Positions 1 through 59,900 of a DNA stretch of 64,000 nt are shown here, piece by piece (the stretch's first letter is position 1; each line of letters starts with the position of its first letter). The position numbers were made by a program, and so were the translations under genes. The stretch comes from Dicyema japonicum. Its lineage: Eukaryota > Animalia > Dicyemida. Location of the stretch: assembly GCA_011109175.1 (NCBI GenBank), contig RDEW01000032.1, positions 403,334-467,333 of the forward strand. The letters are read 5' to 3'. The notes below the pieces were generated by a model that saw nothing but the letters and a program-made list of their open reading frames with translations, was not told the DNA's origin and did no database searches.

Positions 1-174
1 AAATTAGTTGTTCAAAGAATTTTGATAAAAAAGGAAAATAAAATAAATCTATAAAGTTTGAATATATCAAATAAAAAAAAAGTAAGATAAAAAGAATTGA
101 TGTCTAGAAAATAATCATTAATTTTATGATGTAAATAAAGAAACCATTTTATTACCAAACAAAGAACCACTGAA

Positions 175-2305
175 TCAAACTAATTAATATTATCGATCGA
201 TACACCTTCTGTCTTTAATGTAGTAGTAGAGGCTAGAGCTATGATTAGTAATGAAACCTGCTGTTGTCGACTGAGTAATAGAAGCTAGGGAAATGACAAG
301 TCACTATACCATCATTAAATGGAGTGGTAGAAGCTAACGTTAATGAAAAATCATCATACCTGCATTCGTCGACGAAGTAATAGAAGCTAAAGAAATGACT
401 AGTCATTATACATTCAACCAATGGAAAAAAAAAAGCTGAGGTTTATGAAAAATCATTTTACCTTTTAGTGTCGTCAGAGTAGTAGAAGCTAGGGAAATGA
501 CAAGTCACTATACCATTTGTCAATTTAATGGTAGAAGCTAACGTTAATAAAAAGTCATTATACCTGCTGTCGTCGAAGGAGTTGTAGAAGCTAGGGAAAT
601 GACTAGTCACTATACCATTAATCAATTTAGTGGTAGAAGCTAACGTTAATGATAAGTCATTATACCTGCAATCGTTGACGGAGTAGTGGAAGCTAGGGAA
701 ATGACAAGTCACTATACCATTAGTCAATTGAGTGGTAGAAGCTAACGTTAATAAAAAGTCATTATACCTGCTGTCGTCGAAGGAGTTGTAGAAGCTAGGG
801 AAATGACTAGTCACTATACCATTAGTCAAATTAGTGGTAGAAGCTAACGTTAATGAAAAGTCATTATACCTGCTGTCGTCGAAGGAGTTGTAGAAGCTAG
901 GGAAATGACTAGTCACTATACCATTAGTCAAATTAGTGGTAGAAGCTAACGTTAATGAAAAGTCATTATACCTGCTGTCGTCGAAGGAGTTGTAGAAGCT
1001 AGGGAAATGACTAGTCACTATACCATTAGTCAAATTAGTGGTAGAAGCTAACGTTAATGAAAAGTCATTATACCTGCTGTCGTCGAAGGAGTTGTAGAAG
1101 CTAGGGAAATGACTAGTCACTATACCATTAGTCAATTTAGTGGTAGAAGATAACGTTAATGATAAGTCATTATACCTGCAATCGTCGACGTAGTAGTAGA
1201 TGCTAGAAAAATGAATAGTGATTATACCATCAGTCAATGGAGTGGTGGAATCTAACGTTAATGAAAAATCATCATACCTGCTGTTGTCGACTGAGTAATA
1301 GAAGCTGGGGAAATGACTAGTCACTATACCATCTGTCAATGGAGTGGTAGAAGCTAACGTTAATGATAAGTCATTATACCTGCAATCGTCGATTGAGTAG
1401 TAGAAGCTAGGGAAATGAAAAGTCATTAAACCATTAGTAAATAGAGTGGTAGAAGCTAATGTTAATAAACAGTCACTATACCTGCAGTCATCGACGGAGT
1501 AGTAGAATCTAGAGAATTGACTAGTCACTATACCATTAGTCAAATTAGTGGTAGAAGCTAACGTTAATGAAAAGTCATTATACCTGCTGTCGTCGAAGGA
1601 GTTGTAGAAGCTAGGGAAATGACTAGTCACTATACCATTAGTCAAATTAGTGGTAGAAGCTAACGTTAATGAAAAGTCATTATACCTGCTGTCGTCGAAG
1701 GAGTTGTAGAAGCTAGGGAAATGACTAGTCACTATACCATTAGTCAAATTAGTGGTAGAAGCTAACGTTAATGAAAAGTCATTATACCTGCTGTCGTCGA
1801 AGGAGTTGTAGAAGCTAGGGAAATGACTAGTCACTATACCATTAGTCAATTTAGTGGTAGAAACTAACGTTAATAAAAAGTCATTATACCTGCGGTCGAC
1901 GAAGGAGTAATAGAAGCTAGGGAAATGACTAGTCACTATACCATTAGTCAAATTAGTGGTAGAAGCTAACGTTAATGATAAATCATTATACCTGATTTCG
2001 TCGACGAATTAATAGAAGCTAAAGAAATGACTAGTCATCATACATTCAGCCAATGGAAAAATAAAAGCTGAGGTTTTGAAAAATCATTTTACCTCTTAGT
2101 GTCGACAGAGTAGTAGAAGCTAGGGAAATGTCTAGTCATTATACCTGTTGTCGTCGACGGTGTAGTAGAATCTTTATCGTCTATTAATTAAAATTTACAT
2201 TACTTTTTGCTACCAAACGTAATCCAATCTCTAATAATCAAAATTTACAATTTACTGGAAAATATATCGAAGAATAACAAAAGACTGACTAATATCATTC
2301 AACAT
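175..2305 (-). CDS. Ser/Thr-rich mucin-like glycoprotein encoded by tandem micro-exons (24/27 nt) separated by 25/26-nt introns; N- and C-terminal exons uncertain
   Basis: Between 180 and 2144, 39 regularly spaced GT...AG blocks of 25-26 nt (e.g. 285-309 GTATAGTGACTTGTCATTTCCCTAG, 334-359 GTATGATGATTTTTCATTAACGTTAG) alternate with 24- or 27-nt exons, all phase 1. Removing them gives a stop-free (ASTTNLTN ASTTPSTTA)-type repeat with NLT/NAS sequons. One acceptor (1150) is mutated. ATG at 2305 and stop at 177-175 are my best guess. Confidence 0.85.
180..2144. repeat. Tandem repeat with a 102-bp period made of two ~51-bp exon+intron subunits
   Basis: aggagttgta recurs at 781 and 883 (102 bp apart). 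Near-identical units span 742-1125 and 1534-1863, with more diverged units at 1150-1530 and at both ends. Confidence 0.98.
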
Positions 2306-2812
2306 TTCCGTCTGTGTTCGATTATAAATGTTCATCAAAGAATTTGACCTTATTTATTGTGAGTCCGACTGAATTCCATACACCTAAAAAGATATTTGCT
2401 TATATCTCGATTTAATTTCTTCCTCTCACTAATCTCACTTCACGTAATGAAAACGTTCTTTTTTATCTCTGATGACATCAAAAAAATTTTTGTCTAAGGA
2501 GAAAATAACAATCAAAACTAACTTCACAATCATATTTGTTCACAAAAGAGACTCCTGACAAACACCACAGATTTTAACATTACCCTATAAGACGTTATGA
2601 GAAAGACGATAAGACGTTATGTACATATTTTCAATAAACAATGTTATGAGAAATAAACGTGTCAATCAATTTATGTGCTATTATAAAAATAAGGATTAAC
2701 GATATATCAATGCAATATTAGCGCATTCCCACACAGCCCAGAGCCAAATTCGTTCATCTGTGATCGCATTCAATAAATTTATCGTTGGCTTCATTGACCT
2801 TAATATAGAAAA

Positions 2813-4804
2813 TTAAAAATAATACATATCGAAATCAAAGTCGTACTCAAAATCATGATATTTAATAAACTGAAATATTTTTTCTAGAATGGGTTCGTAT
2901 GGATTCAAATCGCTAAAATCTGAATTCATAAAAATAGGGAAAATATCATTTGGATCAATTAATATCTGGCATAGACAACTTAAAATAGAATAGCCAAAAA
3001 TTAGATATTTAGAGTAGTCCATATTTCTTTTCAATAAAACAAAAATTTTACAATATAAAATTTATTAGACCATATGCTGATATTAAATATCTGGTGTTTA
3101 AGCCTATAGCTATATTCTCGACAATTTTAATTACGGCAACTCTTATATATTTGAAATCACATTGAGATACATTATATCTTTCGAAAAAATAATAAATATA
3201 ATGAATTCCATTATAATCGAGAAACAAATTCATATTCTTTTCATTTTCGTCTAAATAAAATATATTTTAAATACCTATAAGAAAATTCAACAAAAAAAAT
3301 TTGCCTGTAATACTTTGATCTCCTGTTTTAAGATGTTCAACACAAGACTAAAATTATATTGTCATATGAACTTCGACAAGTCTTTCAGAATAGGCAATAT
3401 AGGCTAGAAGGTCTGTACTCTTATTTTTTATGATTAATTTAATTTCATGTGAATTAAAGGTATACCAGCATTTAAGATTTATCAATATAATTGATAGTGC
3501 AGGTAACTAAAATAAGAATTAACTAACAAAAGATATTTTCTGCGGTTTAAATTTTAGTACATGCTTAATACAATCGTATAAATCAAATATCAATATATTG
3601 TATAATTCATTGTCATTGGATATAATATCAAGAAAAACATCTAAAATAAAGCTATGGATGATTTTTACTAATACCAACTAATGCCATATGAAATAGAATT
3701 TTGTCTGATTATTTTGAATATAATAATTTTGAAAAATCTATTAACATACAGGTACCGACAAATCAACTAAATTTATATTTTAAAATACTTTCAAAAATGG
3801 TTTTACTAATTTATTTCCAATTTCCACTTCACTATGAATAATCTTGCGAATAGCATAGGACAAAAGTTTGAATTTATTATGCAAGTGTTGAGTAAACGAG
3901 GCTAAGTTATTTATAATTGATTGCAGATCAATCTATATTCTTTTATAAATATACAGAATTGCTTATACTTTTACTGAAATGTAAAACTTTGCTATGGTGA
4001 AATTTTACAAATCCTTTTTTTCTTATTCGTCTAAATTTATTAAAATCATAACTTTGATAACTTTTTTAATACTTTTCCTTTAATAAAATATCCAGTTAAA
4101 TTTACGCAAGTTAGATTATTGGCTTTTTTGAATATAGAAAAGAAATTAAAGTCATATCCTTTCAAATTCCTATCACTTGTATGAATGAAATATCTAAATT
4201 TAATGTAAATAAACCTTAAAGAGTCTGGATTGTTAAAGCTTTCTGTAAATTCCTCAAAATCAGTAATTAAGACATTGTGAAAATTTATGCGTTCCAGTTT
4301 GTCAATTATTTTTAGTGTATTTCTATAAATAGTCGTACCGCTATTGAGTCCAAGTAGGTTGAGTATCCTTATTTTTCTAAAACCAGTCATAAATAGCTGA
4401 TGTAGCAAATCTGGGTCATCATACTCCAATAGTGTGAATGATTTGATCTCATTTGAAAAAAATGGAAGAAAAAGATTCTTTTCTGATGAAATAATCCTTC
4501 TTATTGTAATATTTGATAAGTTTGGATAAAATTGAATCATCTTAACAACGTCCATAACTTCAACATCTTCACGGGTCAATTCAAGGCAAAAAATGTCCTT
4601 CTGTACTTCTTCTGGAATCCTATAAAAACTTGAAAATGTAGAAGATTGATCTTTCTCAGGACGTGAATTCAAATATTTAAGTTCATTAAGGATTCTATTG
4701 GAAAACATTTTTTTAGACTTGCTGTTTAATTTTATATATTTTTGTCCATTCAAGTGTCTTCTAATATTATTAATGCAAAATGCATATAATGATGGTGTAT
4801 CCAT
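2813..4804 (-). CDS. ZYG11: ZYG-11/ZER1-family protein (Cullin2-ElonginBC substrate receptor: BC-box, LRRs, ARM-like C-terminus), 10 exons, 595 aa
   Basis: Hand splicing of GT-AG introns at 4031-4052, 3933-3954, 3767-3788, 3652-3674, 3540-3560, 3507-3527, 3348-3371, 3251-3274 and 3027-3051 joins track ORFs 4046-4804, 3048-3233 and 2813-3034 into one stop-free 1788-nt frame. It has an N-terminal BC-box-like PSLYAFCINNI and LRR-like segments. The C-terminal LLNFLIDE...FLDYNGIHYIYYFFERY...AVIKIVENIA resembles ZYG11 LWNLTDE...FIENQGLELFMRVLESF...KVLGLLNNIA as I recall it. The 12-nt exon 3528-3539 is the least certain part. Confidence 0.75.
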
Positions 4805-5239
4805 TTATCAACTTGAATATATTTTGATGACCTCAATATAAATTTTTATATTTTATATTTGAATTTCATAAAATTTTATTATTTTTATGATAAATAATAC
4901 ATTTTTCGAATTTATCAAAGAAAGCATTTATAAGGAAATTAAATACCTACCGAACATTAGAACTAGTTGATGTAATTTCTTTTGCAACTTCATTCTCAAA
5001 ATTCAGATCAATTCACTATATTTCTTGAATAGGTAGCATGTACATAAACGGATGGTATCCGATGATTGATTTACATAGAAATTACGAGATTATATATAAA
5101 ATAGACACGTGCCTCAGTATCCTGTGTAAGTTATACATTCGTATGAATAGATTTCATACCGTTTTTGTGTCAGTCAGCATGATTTCGAACTCATTTTCAA
5201 TACAACGTATTGAATTAAGGACTCGTTGACTTATTCATC

Positions 5240-8505: not shown

Positions 8506-10830
8506 TACATGTATTGGGATACCAGTGTCACAAAATTGATATTGCCATGCTACAGGAATCGAAACTATCAAGAAAGTCAACGCTTCCACACTGCCATGAT
8601 CGACCGATTCAACCAGAGGAGGCGGTGTTCTCATATTCATACACAAATCTATTTCATTCCCCGATTATTCCGTTCAGACACAAGCTTTGTTTGAAAGATA
8701 ACGATCACATCGAACTACTTCGTGTTAGTGAAATAAACCACACAAGGTATACATTTGTAAATATTTACATCCCGCCACCAAGTTCCGGTATGAAACATTA
8801 CTCCCCAAAACTAACCGAATTGCAAAAGATTGAAAATGTGATAATCTGCGGAGACCTAAATGCAAAAGATCCTCTCTGGATAATTGGCCAAAAGAGTAAT
8901 GAGAAGGGGTTTCATATCCTTTCTCAACTAGAACAATTATCCTCATTGACAGGAAATCATACACTCGAACAGTTACCAGACATGGAGACTCTAATACATT
9001 ACCCGACCATACACTATGTTTTCCATCACTATCTTCGGCGATATCTTGGAGAATTGTAAATACCTACACTCGGACCATAATCCAATTTTACTGTCAATCG
9101 AACTACTCTCGCCTATTGAATAACGAATTTCAAACGTGCGAAATGGGATTCATTCAGAGAAAAAACAGAAAAATTTCTATCCGACCTTTTTCGTTGAGAA
9201 TTTCAAATCGCTTGACACCGCATTGAAATTTTTTAATGAGTTTATCCTTAGTGCTGACAAGAAATACATTCCAAGAGGACTCATTGCAGATTATATTCCC
9301 AATTTCACTAAGGAAATTATTGAAAAGATTCATACAAGACGTCGACTCAAAAAATCAAGAATTTATTCGGAGACGAACTATCCAACCTTAATAGCGAAAT
9401 TACAGAATTAATCAATAAGAAAAAATTGGAACGTTGAACAATTTCATCAGAAAATTAACCACCGAACAAAACTAAAGAATTTTTAGGCACTTTACGTGGA
9501 ATTTAGTCGAAACAAAATAGAATAAAGACAAGCCACGCCTCCAATATTGACAAACATCAAACACCACGTTATTTCACTTATCAGGCAGATGTCATAATGG
9601 TCCACTACGCAAAAGTGGGTCTCATAGATATGAACAAATGCTCTCGTCCATGCAAATTAAAAAACGTTCAAACTCCTCAAGGAAAACCGATTAAAATCAG
9701 TACGTCGGATGTCGAAAACTCATCAAAATCGCCAAAAACTCTCCTGCCAAAGGGCTTGATGGAATCTACATTTAAACACCTGGGAGCGCAAGGACTCTGC
9801 CAAAGGGCTTGATGGAATCTGCATTTAAACACCTGGAGCGCAAGGACTCAAAGCAATAACAGACATAATTTCTGTTTCCATCAACATTTGCAGAATTCTT
9901 GTACTATGGAAAAAATTCAAAATAATCCCAATCTTGAGCCCAAGAAGATCCTTCGGATCCGGGATCTATCAGACCAATTTCACTACTATTTGTCGTATCG
10001 AAAATTTTTGAATGTGTTGTACTGAAACTAATATAGAAGTATCTTCCTCGATTTTCAACATGGCTTTCGTCATCAATACACAACATTAACACATCTCTCT
10101 ACCCTTACTCAATATATCGCTGATGGTTTAACAATTATAATCCTCCCAAACGGAATATCCTGTATCGATCGAACATCAAAACGCGTGTTAAGTAACAAAA
10201 TTCTTGTATCTGGAATTCCTCCATGTCTACAGAATTGGTTAACAAATTTCCTTTCTGGAAAAATTGGTCGAGGTGAAATTACGTCATCTCTATCCCAATA
10301 AAGACTTTTCCAAGTGGAGTTCCCCAAGGCTCCGTTTTATCACCCACCTTATTTAACTTACATTTAAGCGACATTCCAATCAATTCCAAGACACTTCTAC
10401 TATTGTATGTGGATGACATGATTGTGGCCTCTACAGACAAAGACGTTAACGAAGCAACAAAAATGTTCAGATCCACTTGAACACTCTTGAAGAGTGGCTT
10501 GGAGCAAACCACCTATCCCCCTCTCCATCTAAATCCACCGTCACTGTATTCACTATCAACCGCCGTCAACTAAATTTTCACTCAATTTTAACAATTTATG
10601 GACAACCACTCACCGTTACGAAACATCCTAAAATACATAGAGTTATTTATGACCAACTACTAACTTTCTCTAAACATGTGAAGGAACAATTACAAAGGCC
10701 TCTCACAATATCAACATACTTGAATCTGTGTCAAATCATTCCTTTGGCCAAAGCAAAAAAATCTCTAACCACCATATATAGACAATTCATTCAAACAACT
10801 ATTAACTAAGATATCTTGCCATGGTCTCCA
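8505..10830 (+). mobile_element. Jockey/I-like LINE, endonuclease plus RT, heavily frameshifted
   Basis: EEP endonuclease motifs IAMLQESKL, FVNIYIPP and IICGDLNAK (8514-9059). RT motifs GVPQGSVLSPTLFNLHLSDIP (~10315-10380) and YVDDMIVA (~10405). Confidence 0.85.
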
Positions 10831-18440: not shown

Positions 18441-18899
18441 ATGTCGGTTAAAATCAAGCTTTTTTTCAAAAGTTAATTTATACTAAAAAAGTACGACAGT
18501 GAGAGTTCCCAAACACCAAGCCAATACTTACACAGCCTATAACTGCTTAACTTCCTTGGTCGACTGAGAACGGCTGCTTACGGCCAAGTATGATAGTTCT
18601 TTAGATTTTTGTAATAGTTGTTTACTGTTGTTTTTATCAGTATCCGAGTTAATATTATTTTTTAAGACAATAACGAGTAAATCAACTAATTTCAACTAAT
18701 TAAGCGTATTTTAATCCAGATTGTTGGAAATCCCTCTTCTTCTCTTAGAAGAAGAATGTGCCATAACCTCTCTGCTACTCCGAATCTCCACATCAGATTC
18801 AGTCAAAATATCTCCGTTAGAGTCCAGTGGGCTGTCCTCACGGCACGCCAGTTCCACAAGTTGGAAGTAGCAAAGGCCTACTCTTCACCGTATACCTTC

Positions 18900-19535: not shown

Positions 19536-19574
<39 letters not shown>

Positions 19575-20305
19575 TTTTTGATAAAAAAATATTTTAAATA
19601 TTTAAATAATTAATGGTATTTATAACAATAAAATCGTTCTAAAGTCCAGCGGATATGATCGAGTGGCTGTTACCTCTGCCATCAGACTTGGATTGAAAGT
19701 TTGTCAACCCCATGAGTGCCGATGCGGCCGGAAGGTCGACTGCTATGGACATCATGCCCTTTCTTGTCGAAAAAGCGCAGGTCGATTCGCTAGACACAAG
19801 GCTATAAATGAAGTGTGAAGCGCGCCCTCGAGTTGGCGGGATACCCATCCATTCTAGAGCCAACGGGCTTGAGTAGGGATGATGGGAAGCGACCCGATGG
19901 AATTACTGTCTTCCCCTTCTCTCGGGGCAAATGCTTAATTTGGGATGCTGCCTGTACTGACAGCTTTTCCCAGTCGAAACTTTTGAGGTCGGCAATGAAA
20001 GCGGGAGAGGCTGCCCGTTTATATGAAAACTCGAAGATAAAGAAATACAGCAGCCTCATAAACCGTTTTCATATACAGCCAGTGGTCGTCGAGACGAGCG
20101 GAGTCTTTGGCCCAAGACGGTCTCTTTCCTTAGAGCACTTGGGTGTCTATTGACCAAAGCCTCGAGGAGCGTCGGGAAACCGAGTGGCTTTTCCAAAGGA
20201 TATCCCTGGCAGTAGTCAGAGGTAACAGCCACTCGATCATATCCGCTGGACTTTAGAACGATTTTATTGTTATAAATACCATTAATTATTTAAATATCTG
20301 AAATT
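19533..20305. mobile_element. 5'-truncated CRE-clade insertion with poly(A) tail, 10-bp TSD and internal inversion
   Basis: TSD ATCTGAAATT at 19533-19542 and 20296-20305. T33 at 19541-19573. The minus-oriented 3' end runs to 19678. The plus-oriented segment 19679-20297 encodes PHECRCG...HALSC and EPTGLSRDDGKRPDGITVFPF...WDA...VETSG. Confidence 0.92.
19598..20297. repeat. Perfect 81-bp inverted repeat (19598-19678 / 20217-20297)
   Basis: Base-by-base comparison of the left arm with the reverse complement of the right arm shows no mismatch. Confidence 0.95.
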
Positions 20306-27419: not shown

Positions 27420-27983
27420 GATATTTGACAAAGCTATTAATTTGCTACGTCCCAGTAGTGCTTGTGGTCCCGACGGTGTTTGCACTATTCACCTCAAACA
27501 CCTTTGACCTCAGGCACGGGCCATCTATCAAGACTGTACAACAAATCTATCAACTACCATACGGTACCTAAATATATGGAAAAACTCTCTGATTACGCCA
27601 ATTCTAAAGCCTTGAAAACCAAAAGACGTTCCCTCTTCTTACCGCCCATCTCAATTACTTGTGTTTTATCAAAAGTGCTGGAAAAGCTTGTATTAATGCG
27701 CATCTCTCCTGTTCTACATCTACCAGAATTTCAACATGGTTTCAGAACAGACAATTCTACAGCGATTCATTTGGGTTCTATCTCTCAGTTTACTACTGAC
27801 AGCTTTAACATGAGAACACAGTTACGGACGGCCCTAAAATCTATCGATTTACAGAAGGCCTATGATTCTGTTTCGAAGAAACTCATAACGCAAAAAATTT
27901 TTAATTCCAACTTACATCCGAACATCAAGCTATGGCTGGAAAAATTAATACAAAATTACTTCAAAAGGTCACCAAAATTTTGA
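27420..27983 (+). mobile_element. Jockey-like RT fragment
   Basis: PISITCVLSKVLEKLV...FQHGFR...IDLQKAYDSV (ORF 27462-27983). Confidence 0.85.
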
Positions 27984-43780: not shown

Positions 43781-43852
43781 ACACGTGGATATTAGAAGCC
43801 TTGAGCAACATATACTGAATACTGGATTTGAAGCAATCACCTAATCTCTTAC

Positions 43853-44081
43853 CTAGTGAGGAAACCACTATGACTGAGGAAACCACTATAAATAAATAAA
43901 TCTCCTACCTAGTGAGGAAACCATTATGACTGAGGAAACCAATATAAATAAATAAATCTCCTACCTAGTGAAGAAACAACTATAAATAAATAAATCTCCT
44001 ACCTAGTGAAGAAACACCTATGACTGAGGAAACCATTATAAATAAATTAATTTCCTATCTACTGAGGAAACCACTATGACT
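43853..44081. repeat. Short tandem array, 56-bp unit (33 nt + 23 nt), one unit with an 18-nt deletion
   Basis: Units start at 43853, 43909, 43965 (38 bp) and 44003, with a partial fifth. Confidence 0.92.
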
Positions 44082-56972: not shown

Positions 56973-59900
56973 TTATTATTATTTATTATTATTTAAAGCA
57001 CTCCCGAGAAGTCATAAAATTAATCAAGCCTCCCTTGTGCCGTATTTCTAGCCATCCTCTCTATCAGCCTTTTCCAGGACCCTCTACTTCGTGCCAGTTC
57101 CCTTAAGGTATCTAGGTCGTCTGCGGAAGTGAGCTTCAGTCCCACAGCCGACAGGTCTCCATTCAAAATAGTTGGGAGTGTGACTCTTGGTCTTCCACGG
57201 AAACCGGCTCCCGTATGCATTAGGTAGTTTTCCATGGCGATATTCGCGGGTACTTGAGCATTTAGACGTAAGATATGTCCAAAGAGACTCCATCTTGATC
57301 TGAAGATCTCCTCGGATAGTATACCAGATTTGCACTTCGAGTAGAGGTCATTGTTTGAGATCTTCTTAGGCCACTTGATCTTGATTACTGATTTCAATTG
57401 TGTCCTGTGGAAAGCGTCAAGACGGTCCATCTCTTGTTTAGAGATTCCCCAAGTGCCTGAATTGTAGGTCAGGACGGGGATGACAAAAGCCTTATATATT
57501 CTGAGTTTGGTGTTTAATCCCATCCTCTTCTTATGACCCCACATATTCGATACTTTCTTTAGTGCACACATTGCGAGGATTTTCCTCCGAGAAACATCTT
57601 CTGAGTCCCCGAGAAGCGAACCCACCTTCTTTTGCTTTCTCCAAGACTCGTCCGATCTTCGATCATTGCGTGTAAGTGTTGTGAACTCTGTTTTATCGGT
57701 GTTAACGGTTAAGAACCATTTCGAGAATACGTGTGGAAGAACGTTAAGCATGTGTTGAAGTACTTGAATATCCTCAGAAACAAAGTCCAGGTCGTCCGCG
57801 TAGATTATCTCGTTATAATTGTTGCCAACCAGGGGTCTGAACTCTCTTAGTGCGGCCTCAAGGTAGACAATAAAGAGGACCGGGGATAGTGAGTCCCCCT
57901 GTGGAACTCCACGTGAGGTCGAAAAAAAGTTAGAGGTAGAGTCACCAATTTTGACGGCAAGTTGAGTGTTCCGCATGAGTAAGTGTATTATTTTGACATC
58001 GTCAGGCAGTAGAAAACTCTCCAACACTTCCATAAGTTTTCCACGGTCCACCGAGTCGAACGCACGGGACATGTCGATACCAAGTATCTCAATAGATTTT
58101 TTGTATTTTTGGCACAGGGCACAATACCACCTGTGCCCCCATACCACGTCAGCCGTGGACCTGCCCGTCCGGAATCCACTTTGGCCGTCCGAAAGAAATA
58201 TGTTCACCCTCTCCTTTATTCGGTTTAAAGCAATGAGGGATAATGTTTTTCGTATGGAGGTTAGGAGTATAATAGGTCTGAAGTTGTGAGGGGGGCCTTT
58301 ACTTTTTCCCGGTTTTTGTAGTGGAATTAGCCACCCTTTTCCCAGTTCCAGTTCATCTGCACCCTCGAGAGACCGGTTGAAAATGTTAGTAATCATTTCA
58401 ATTAGCTCCTCCGGGCCGTATTGTAAAAGTTCTGCAGTAATGAAGTCTGGTCCGGCAGATCTTCCGGTATTTAATTTTTTAATAGCTTGTTGAGTTTCGG
58501 ATATGGTAATAGGGCTAGTTAGAGTGTACTTGTAAGACTTCCGAGATTTCATTGCTTGGTCAGCCGCGTCCTGTTTGTTGAACATAAGGTCAAAATGGGA
58601 TGCCAGAACGTTTGCTTTGTTAATGGTCCCGATAACGTCGTGACCAAGGTTGTCATGGACAGTTAACGAAATTGGACAGTTTTCTCTGCTAAGAAGCCGG
58701 ATTGCTTTGAACATTCTTGGTCCGTTCTTGTACTTTAATATGTCTGAGATTTTCTCCTCAGCTTCATTTTTGGCAAGGAATCTTTGTATTTGTTTGATCT
58801 TCGTTAAGACTCTCCCTCTCTGGGTGCGCAGTACTTTGATATCTTCCGGAGCGTTTGTGTTTTCCATCCGGAGTCTGAGCTCTTTCTGTGTTACAGAGAG
58901 TTGTCCGATATCCGGATTACATTGTTTGTGACGAGATTTGGTGATGTGACCAAGCACACTAAAGGCTGTGTTTTGGATAGCAACCACTATTTCATCCCAT
59001 AAGCTGTTTGTCGGCTGATTTTGGTTAATACTGTTGATGCTATCTCTCAGAACTGCACTATAACGACATTTGGTGGATTCTTCGTAGCGTAACCTCTCAG
59101 TGTCGAAACGTACTGAGGTAAGGCCTTTGTGTTTCCCGTGTATTCCATGGATTCTTTTAAGTACTAGCCGGGCGACCACAAGTTTATGATCGCTACTTGT
59201 TTCAAGTCCACCGTAAGATCTCGAGTCCTGTAGGAGGGCCTTCTGATGTTGCTTGCAGATAATATAGTCGATCTGATTGTATATATTGACTGTGTTTCCA
59301 GATTTGCCTTTTCTGGTACCAACCCACGTGGTCCTGTGTCTTGCCGGGTGCTTGAAACAAGTGTTGCATATGAGTAGGTTGAATGCCGTGCAAAATTGTA
59401 TTAATGCCTCTCCGGGGATGTTACGGCGGTTTCTACCGTGGGATCCAATACACGTTTCACCAGGTCTTGCTTTTCCGGCCCTGGCGTTCCAGTCCCCGGC
59501 GAAAAAAGAAAGTAAGAGGATGAAAGTGAGTTGTACACACTTGTGAGAGTAGAGTAAAACGTATCCAGTTCTTCGATATTCGTTGATACACGTGCTCCGG
59601 TTGGGGCATATACATTTATGATGGAGATCACTGAGTTGAGTTTGTTTCCGCATTTGATTTGTAACACCGCGACACGGTCAGATACTGCCCATACTCTTGA
59701 GACACAGTGAAACAAGTGCCGATGAACAGCAAATCCGAGCCCATAGTGCCTGCAGTCTGGTGTGAGGGTCAAAAGGTAAAAATTCTGAAACAGTTCTGCA
59801 GATTGTTCGGTTATTTTCGTCTCTTGCAAACAACAGACAGAGATGTTGTATTTACTCAGATCACGCGCCAATTGTTGTTTCTTGTAGCACTGATTGAGGC

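Follow-up and report, generated by a model that had tools for sequence, protein, structure and literature searches.

In the polymorphic mucins of Schistosoma mansoni (SmPoMuc), each repeat of 9 amino acids (aa), rich in Ser and Thr, is encoded by an exon of 27 base pairs (bp), and this exon together with its introns stands in tandem up to about 20 times (PMC2576457). The genomic unit is roughly 1 kb long and carries a microsatellite, the introns average about 550 bp and are more than 94% identical, and the product is a secreted parasite glycoprotein of variable repeat number that has a conserved C-terminal domain encoded in exons 3-15 (PMC2576457). Introns that are more uniform than the exons between them are a feature of the tandem cassettes of both SmPoMuc and the spider Flag silk gene (PMC2576457). 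Another group of schistosome genes, the micro-exon genes (MEGs), is marked by short symmetric exons, multiples of 3 in length, that account for the bulk of the coding sequence, by a signal peptide, a secreted product, fast exon evolution and exon skipping that keeps the reading frame (PMC10526429, PMC4350168), with introns that reach 5 kb (PMC10526429). Animal introns shorter than 30 nucleotides (nt) have been reported only for myxobolid myxozoans and for the dicyemid Dicyema japonicum (PMC13644364). The present analysis deals with a tandem array of 102-bp units in a 64,000-nt stretch of D. japonicum DNA (contig RDEW01000032.1, positions 403,334 to 467,333; hereafter the window). Judged from its sequence, this array is probably a spliced protein-coding gene on the minus strand (2298..175), and its product would most likely be secreted, mucin-like and heavily glycosylated.

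Among the systems known, SmPoMuc appears to be the nearest, with the array gene as its analogue and not a member of it. In both, a 27-nt exon encodes 9 aa (here it is exon A of every unit) and the introns are more conserved than the exons, whereas the array gene differs from SmPoMuc in having a cassette of 49-53 bp, introns of 25 or 26 nt, no C-terminal domain and no sequence homology that could be found. An initial annotation of the locus had started from the premise that mucin repeats usually lie within one large exon, by which the design seemed to be without precedent; this takes no account of SmPoMuc (PMC2576457) or of the MEGs. With the latter, the array gene shares exons (numbers 2-41) of 24, 27 or 36 nt that all lie between phase-1 introns, but its introns measure 23-26 nt and its exons are tandem copies, while MEG proteins are small, are not mucin-like and come from flatworms; no homology to MEGs was found, and membership among them is unsupported. 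A parallel in mode of growth is offered by the spider Flag silk gene, likewise a gene for a repetitive protein that grew by tandem exon-intron modules. Fibrillar collagen genes, with their 54-bp exons, and the Balbiani-ring BR3 gene of Chironomus also grew by exon-intron modules. In contrast to the array gene, however, the modules of Flag, collagen and BR3 measure from hundreds to thousands of bases and contain introns of ordinary size, and none of these genes comes near 41 introns in 2.1 kb. In size and signals, the introns of the array gene resemble those described from D. japonicum and the myxobolids, which are in the low twenties of nucleotides, have reduced signals (GTA ... AG) and show a few A residues upstream of the AG, although the genes treated in these reports are ordinary unique ones and tandem exon-intron cassette arrays are not mentioned there (PMC13644364, PMC6736024). 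Finally, the head-to-tail 102-bp units, their 86% identity and the runs of identical units are those of a classical satellite or minisatellite; unlike satellite DNA, the array is low-copy, is surrounded by a complete gene frame and shows a block-wise constraint that matches the exon/intron boundaries. In the literature searched, no paper was found that connects dicyemids to mucins or to arrays of micro-exons in tandem. The novelty would be one of scale, with a cassette of about 50 bp, introns about as long as the exons, and an appearance that is satellite-like to the eye and to a repeat masker, and the array gene is probably an extreme miniature form of a known architecture.

Tandem Repeats Finder places the array at 256-2145, with a period of 102 bp, 18.5 copies, 86% matches and 0% indels. 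Read in register on the minus strand, the unit consists of exon A (27 nt), an intron of 26 nt, exon B (24 nt) and an intron of 25 nt, and both intron blocks have GT at the start and AG at the end; 18 full units are followed by one diverged final unit. The initial annotation had described the same anatomy, and its description of the sequence proved correct in all details that can be checked. The split of the unit into blocks of 25, 24, 26 and 27 nt is exact in the 18 full units and in the diverged last one, and the 39 introns counted between 180 and 2144 are all present, with GT donors in each (GTAT, GTAA, GTTT or GTGT) and YAG acceptors in 38, including a CAG at 1305, the sole exception being the TAT of intron 22. 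The claims of phase 1 throughout (internal exons are all 24, 27 or 36 nt), of an intron content near one half (49%, from 1041 nt of intron in a gene of 2124 nt) and of a stop-free spliced product with the quoted Ser/Thr repeats likewise held when the model was built and translated. What needed to be extended was the reach of the gene, as the whole has 41 introns, two more than the array itself; the additional pair, at 2255-2231 and 2203-2181, belongs to the unique 5' flank. The upper limit, which had been set at 2305, moves to 2298, as the start codon compatible with the frame lies there.

The complete gene model (Table 1) has 1083 coding nt in 42 exons and 1041 nt in 41 introns, and would give a protein of 360 aa. 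Its introns, all in phase 1, are 25 nt (22 introns), 26 nt (18 introns) or 23 nt (one intron) long; every donor is GT and 40 of the 41 acceptors are AG. No internal stop interrupts the 360 codons of the spliced frame, and an in-frame TGA lies immediately upstream of the ATG. An AATAAA such as the one downstream of the stop codon has a 5-7% chance of falling within 5-40 nt downstream of a given site in the window. The introns are poorer in GC than the exons (30.8% vs 40.6%). None of their lengths is a multiple of 3 and 19 of the 41 contain an in-frame stop, so that a retained intron would be detectable. The one broken acceptor could be passed over, since a skip from the donor of intron 22 to the next acceptor (1101) drops the 24-nt exon 23 (1149-1126) and leaves the frame intact and open.

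Both introns of the unit have an 18-nt motif at their 5' end in common, which occurs 35 times in the array and nowhere else in the 64-kb window, with 0.17 copies expected. The positions that do not vary are the initial GTA, the TGA of positions 7-9, the terminal AG and, some 9 nt before the end, a T-Y-A-T, which is a possible branch site. No match in the array was returned by an Rfam scan, and the folding energies of the introns were not significant (z-scores of -1.9, 0.0 and -1.6). The 25-nt introns (e.g., 1713-1737) have a perfect palindrome of 10-14 bp, TGACTAGTCA or, in some units, AATGACTAGTCATT, and the 26-nt introns have an interrupted one, AATGA-N4-TCATT; the RNA hairpins predicted from them are weak, and a DNA-level role in recombination or protein binding is possible.

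Tests internal to the sequence, four of them largely independent of one another, favour a spliced gene over chance, an unspliced open reading frame (ORF) and a neutral satellite. The unit was put through 3000 dinucleotide shuffles that were searched for two-intron partitions of the form GTW..YAG, with introns of 19-32 nt and an open spliced frame. Any such partition was permitted by 5.5% of the shuffled units, a figure that falls to 1.9% if the lengths of both exons must be divisible by 3; the real unit admits no partition with introns of 19-32 nt other than the one described above. The 228-nt 5' flank was treated in the same way, with 1000 dinucleotide shuffles and chains of up to three mini-introns, and 140 of the shuffled flanks gave a chain from an ATG into the Ser/Thr frame, while 2 did so with an equally hydrophobic start. 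The third test concerned the phasing of variants among the 14 distinct units, in which 47 distinct variants fall in the 51 exon columns vs 23 in the 51 intron columns (approximate binomial p = 0.006, or 0.003 when CpG columns are left out); differences per site are 0.146 in exons and 0.069 in introns. The real exon/intron mask ranks third of 102 circular shifts of the variant count and is outdone only by the half-unit shift, which is equivalent to it. In the fourth test, the eight GT/AG columns were found to hold a single variant, against about 3.6-5.5 expected from the mean variant rates.

The intron columns were also read as codons of the unspliced frame, where their changes divide into 6 synonymous and 17 non-synonymous or stop changes. 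This variation is not codon-like, which points to a constraint on the introns at the level of the nucleotides, as expected of splicing signals; an unspliced protein would lead one to expect codon-like changes in the conserved blocks. Constrained blocks of 25 and 26 nt between freely changing ones of 24 and 27 nt fit the prediction for a spliced gene with tiny introns. Counts by codon position and of synonymous and non-synonymous changes gave no signal of purifying selection in either frame, and the two frames are not separable by these counts alone.

Independent grounds for introns of this size come from a unique gene at 4804..3049, on the same strand and about 500 nt upstream of the array gene, which served as a positive control for mini-introns. 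It has at least seven introns of 21-24 nt (GTW..TAG), and when seven are removed, a frame of 532 aa with no Pfam family opens, which a mechanical chain finder scored at 1428 vs best scores of 413-527 in eight runs on shuffled strands. Its first exon encodes 252 aa with no match in protein collections. By the evidence of this neighbour's reading frame, introns of 21-24 nt are real in this genome, and those of the array match them in their GT..AG ends, their length of 23-26 nt and their greater AT content relative to exons. The window as a whole has a GC content of about 35%, and its long ORFs are open in the standard code; the published D. japonicum genome has 36.7% GC and 49% repeats, among which long interspersed nuclear elements (LINEs) are prominent (PMC6736024).

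Table 1. Parts of the predicted array gene, with coordinates in the window.
Feature	Coordinates	Strand	Description or basis
Whole predicted gene	175..2298	-	ATG 2298 to TGA 177-175; model built and translated
Exon 1	2256..2298	-	43 nt; start codon and hydrophobic, signal-peptide-like N-terminus (M-ILVSLLLFF-DIFS)
Intron 1	2231..2255	-	25 nt, GTAA..TTAG, phase 1, unique sequence; needed for the in-frame join of exons 1 and 2
Exon 2	2204..2230	-	27 nt, unique sequence; translated model
Intron 2	2181..2203	-	23 nt, GTAA..ATAG, phase 1, unique sequence; gene model
Exon 3	2145..2180	-	36 nt; 3' part already repeat-like (DSTTPSTTT)
Core array	285..2144	-	Intron 3 (2144-2120), then 18 units (exons 4-39, introns 4-39); Tandem Repeats Finder, register, splice sites
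Intron 4	2068..2092	-	25 nt in the window; 26 nt in DNA contigs of runs X2-X4
Intron 22	1150..1175	-	Only broken acceptor (TAT for TAG); gene model
Diverged last unit	180..284	-	Exons 40 and 41, introns 40 and 41
Exon 40	258..284	-	27 nt; last unit
Intron 40	233..257	-	25 nt, GTTT..CTAG; last unit
Exon 41	206..232	-	27 nt; last unit
Intron 41	180..205	-	26 nt, GTGT..TTAG; last unit
Exon 42	175..179	-	Last two bases of a Val codon and stop TGA; translated model
Candidate poly(A) signal	148..153	-	AATAAA, 22 nt past the stop; sequence

The predicted product of 360 aa is dominated by Thr (32.5%), Ser (17.8%) and Ala (14.2%), such that Ser and Thr together make up 50% of it. Beyond the N-terminus, whose hydrophobic core after Met1 (ILVSLLLFF) has a Kyte-Doolittle mean of 3.19 over 9 residues, repeats of 9 aa (ASTTPSTTA) alternate with repeats of 8 aa (ASTTNLTN), giving two N-X-S/T sequons for every 17 residues. 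The whole has 21 such sequons and about 180 Ser and Thr residues, all of which are potential glycosylation sites only. The C-terminus (...TLKTEV) comes directly after the repeats, with no membrane anchor, hydrophobic tail or C-terminal domain, and the product therefore looks secreted; the words "surface" and "stalk", which the initial annotation had applied to it, find no support in a model that ends in this way. From the predicted sequence, the protein would be called mucin-like and not a member of a mucin gene family, as true mucin families have a membrane anchor or gel-forming domains (SEA/transmembrane, VWD, CK).

Four sequencing runs from one sample, dated 2019, were aligned with positions 100-4900 of the window. 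They bear out both the array and the point where it joins the unique 5' flank (e.g., by a 285-nt contig over 2010-2293), and read depth over the array is about that of the unique flanks, so the array is no high-copy satellite. Genes and intergenic stretches are covered evenly, contigs of the runs pass through the introns of the control gene, and no joints of 21-26 nt occur anywhere in 100-4900, the control gene included; the runs are therefore taken to be genomic DNA, and splicing and expression are what we infer from the rest. All exons apart from exon 1 (43 nt) and exon 3 (36 nt) are below 31 nt, and hence almost no genomic word of 31 letters would be present in the spliced messenger RNA, which leaves word-indexed searches of sequencing runs nearly blind to it. 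Inside the array there are also long joints that skip 55-1692 nt and have foreign letters where their two sides meet; the skips do not correspond to whole 102-bp units.

The runs also show two small differences in length, both of which fall within putative introns. All contigs of three runs have an extra base behind 2076, including one contig linked to the unique 5' flank (2010-2293), by which intron 4 becomes 26 nt long, and the base missing from the window may be an assembly slip or an allele. The other is a minor loss of one base at 1264, in the T-run of intron 20. At position 2131, the window has T where the run contigs have A, and A restores the consensus intron sequence. The differences at 2076 and 2131 are likely small assembly slips or alleles, though the one at 2131 could also be explained by contigs that derive from other units.

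The first 61 residues of the spliced product, used as a query, gave no match in protein databases, and neither did a word-indexed protein search with the unspliced ORF. When that ORF was compared exhaustively with 1.84 billion representative proteins, five weak matches of repeat on repeat were obtained. One of them (P0005), which contains STTNLTN and has a 34-aa period, was rejected as a coincidence, as its source, a 735-bp contig from an ENA metagenome (k141_28580, L001), is unrelated, richer in GC, built of a different 102-bp unit and free of GT..AG blocks.

A number of points count against a working spliced gene. The runs behave as genomic DNA, and the databases contain no protein of the locus, although the proteins of this organism seem to be absent there, so that the blank says little. 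The signal peptide was judged from hydrophobicity alone, and the Pro content of the product (4.7%) is low for a classical mucin. The p-values of the variant counts are approximate, as the units are related by descent. Codons for Ser, Thr and Ala are seldom one step away from a stop, which makes the open frame weak evidence by itself. Exon changes comprise 35 non-synonymous vs 12 synonymous ones, with no purifying selection, and the broken acceptor at 1150 could signal decay.

The last two points, together with the blank databases and the genomic nature of the runs, also speak for the alternative that survives best, namely that the array is a relic or a silent copy: a micro-exon gene that was once spliced, or a copy of one elsewhere in the genome, which is now unexpressed or decaying. 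On this reading, the TAT at 1150 is a mutated acceptor, one among 41, and it fits that the exon substitutions look neutral. What makes a relic improbable in our judgement is how much is intact, from the ATG and the signal-like start through 41 of 41 donors and 40 of 41 acceptors to the stop codon and its AATAAA, with neither a stop nor a frameshift in 360 codons. Moreover, the broken acceptor is bypassed in frame by the skip of one symmetric exon, and the runs of identical units are a mark of recent turnover and not of long decay.

Ranked next, and also held to be unlikely, is a non-coding satellite, in which a neutral 102-bp repeat would have its GT..AG blocks and open frames by chance. In its favour, a period that is a multiple of 3 often gives an open frame (an estimated 40% or so for a unit of 34 codons at this base composition), some two-intron open partition exists in 5.5% of the shuffled units, and the sequencing runs are of genomic nature. 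Under a neutral satellite, however, variation should be uniform and gene ends absent, and this reading leaves unexplained the combination of an in-frame ATG, a hydrophobic start and two mini-introns in the flank (the 2 cases in 1000 shuffles), a variation that is lower by a factor of two in the intron blocks alone, the near-invariant GT/AG columns, and the stop codon and AATAAA at the far end. The depth of the array, which is like that of the unique flanks, and the absence of the 18-nt motif from the remainder of the 64 kb are further observations that it does not fit.

Hardly credible, lastly, is an unspliced repeat protein with the 34-aa repeat FYNSFDDSRYNDFSLTLASTTNLTNGIVTSHFPS, for although the minus strand has an ORF of 497 aa (1951..458) in the standard code, overlooked in the initial annotation, and the chain finder leaves the central units unspliced, this frame has no ATG near its start, is closed in units 0, 1 and 16 and in the last unit by TAA or TAG stops where the spliced frame is open, could be reached from the flanking ATG only by splicing out introns identical to the central ones it retains, varies in its supposedly conserved parts by the 17 to 6 ratio given above, and drew only sub-threshold noise from Pfam and spurious repeat matches from the 1.84 billion proteins. 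The unspliced repeat has 8 of its 34 codons in common with the spliced frame, and the TAA and TAG stops of the unspliced frame sit within putative introns or within exon A where it is read in its other frame.

Returning to the spliced gene as the preferred reading, a course of events can be proposed in which transcription, splicing, secretion and glycosylation are steps that we infer. A primary transcript of about 2.2 kb would be made from the minus strand, and its 41 introns of 23-26 nt would be taken out singly by way of the GTA-type donors, the T-Y-A-T and the YAG acceptors, leaving the reading frame of 1083 nt; introns of 25 nt are presumably recognised as whole introns. The protein made from this frame would begin with a signal peptide, continue with the alternating 9- and 8-aa repeats rich in Ser, Thr and Ala, and end without an anchor, and it would be secreted with heavy O- and N-glycosylation.

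Growth of the gene, which the initial annotation had attributed to the duplication of whole exon-intron cassettes, is supported by the anatomy in the form of identical units, a shared odd exon and a shared motif. Because both introns share the 18-nt 5' motif, the 102-bp unit can be regarded as having arisen long ago as a dimer of an exon-plus-intron cassette some 51 bp long. Later copying of multi-unit blocks is suggested by units 3-5 and units 10-12, which are identical copies, and by units 0 and 16, which have an odd hydrophobic exon in common (AFIFPLAE and AFFFPLVE). By unequal exchange or duplication, the gene would thus have passed from the unit of about 51 bp to the 102-bp dimer and on to blocks of several units, with the introns multiplying along with the repeats. 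The introns would be held near constant, as many of their 25 positions may carry splicing signal, while the exons drift or diversify. Combinatorial exon skipping, which had been put forward as a means of diversification, is arithmetically possible, given that all internal exons are symmetric and any skipping keeps the frame. We consider it unlikely, with the possible exception of intron 22 and its broken acceptor, because skipping an exon would produce a 75-nt intron or thereabouts, a length out of the ordinary for this genome.

Elsewhere in the window, a small tandem array at 43843-44081 (periods of 38, 56 and 94 bp by Tandem Repeats Finder) has on its minus strand two 23-nt blocks, GTAGGAG..TTTATAG, set between blocks of 33 and 15 nt, both multiples of 3. 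It may be another array of micro-exon and micro-intron cassettes, although other copies of the block are without the final AG. A 5S ribosomal RNA match at 18488-18601 (minus strand) scores 38.9 bits vs an Rfam gathering score of 38 and lies amid retrotransposon fragments. Fragments of LINE reverse transcriptases are numerous in the window, and LINE-type elements are present at 57020-59653 (minus strand), 8514-9059 and 27462-27983 (both plus strand), and they include one intact-looking ORF of 877 aa with a reverse-transcriptase domain (E = 4e-32) as well as fragments with endonuclease and reverse-transcriptase domains. A run of 39 T, 94% pure, occupies 19541-19579. Outside the array gene and its neighbour at 4804..3049, the window is by its appearance mostly retroelement debris.

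If the gene is spliced as predicted, with 41 introns for 1083 coding bases and half of the locus intron, it would have one of the highest intron densities of which we know. It would mean that amplifying a cassette of about 50 bp in the manner of a satellite is enough to multiply introns, and the locus would provide a test bed for how a spliceosome recognises dozens of 25-nt introns between exons of 24-27 nt. There would be consequences for annotation, too, as repeat masking would strip real genes from the annotation of genomes with tiny introns. Before the gene models of D. japonicum were made, repeats occurring over 30 times had been masked (PMC13644364, PMC6736024), and this step may hide such genes. 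In the published annotation, which lists 5,012 genes, repeats were masked prior to gene modelling.

For the biology of the animal, the array gene would be a candidate for a secreted glycoprotein at the interface of parasite and host, with an architecture parallel to that of the schistosome polymorphic mucins. Dicyema japonicum is a parasite of octopuses. As a tentative and distinctly speculative extension, dicyemids may have a hidden class of satellite-like genes for secreted or surface glycoproteins, built of cassettes of about 50 bp with an intron for every 26 or so coding bases and missed by repeat masking. In such genes, the introns would stay uniform while the exons diversify, and the number of repeats, and perhaps the choice of exons, would vary between individuals and so alter the coat of the parasite.

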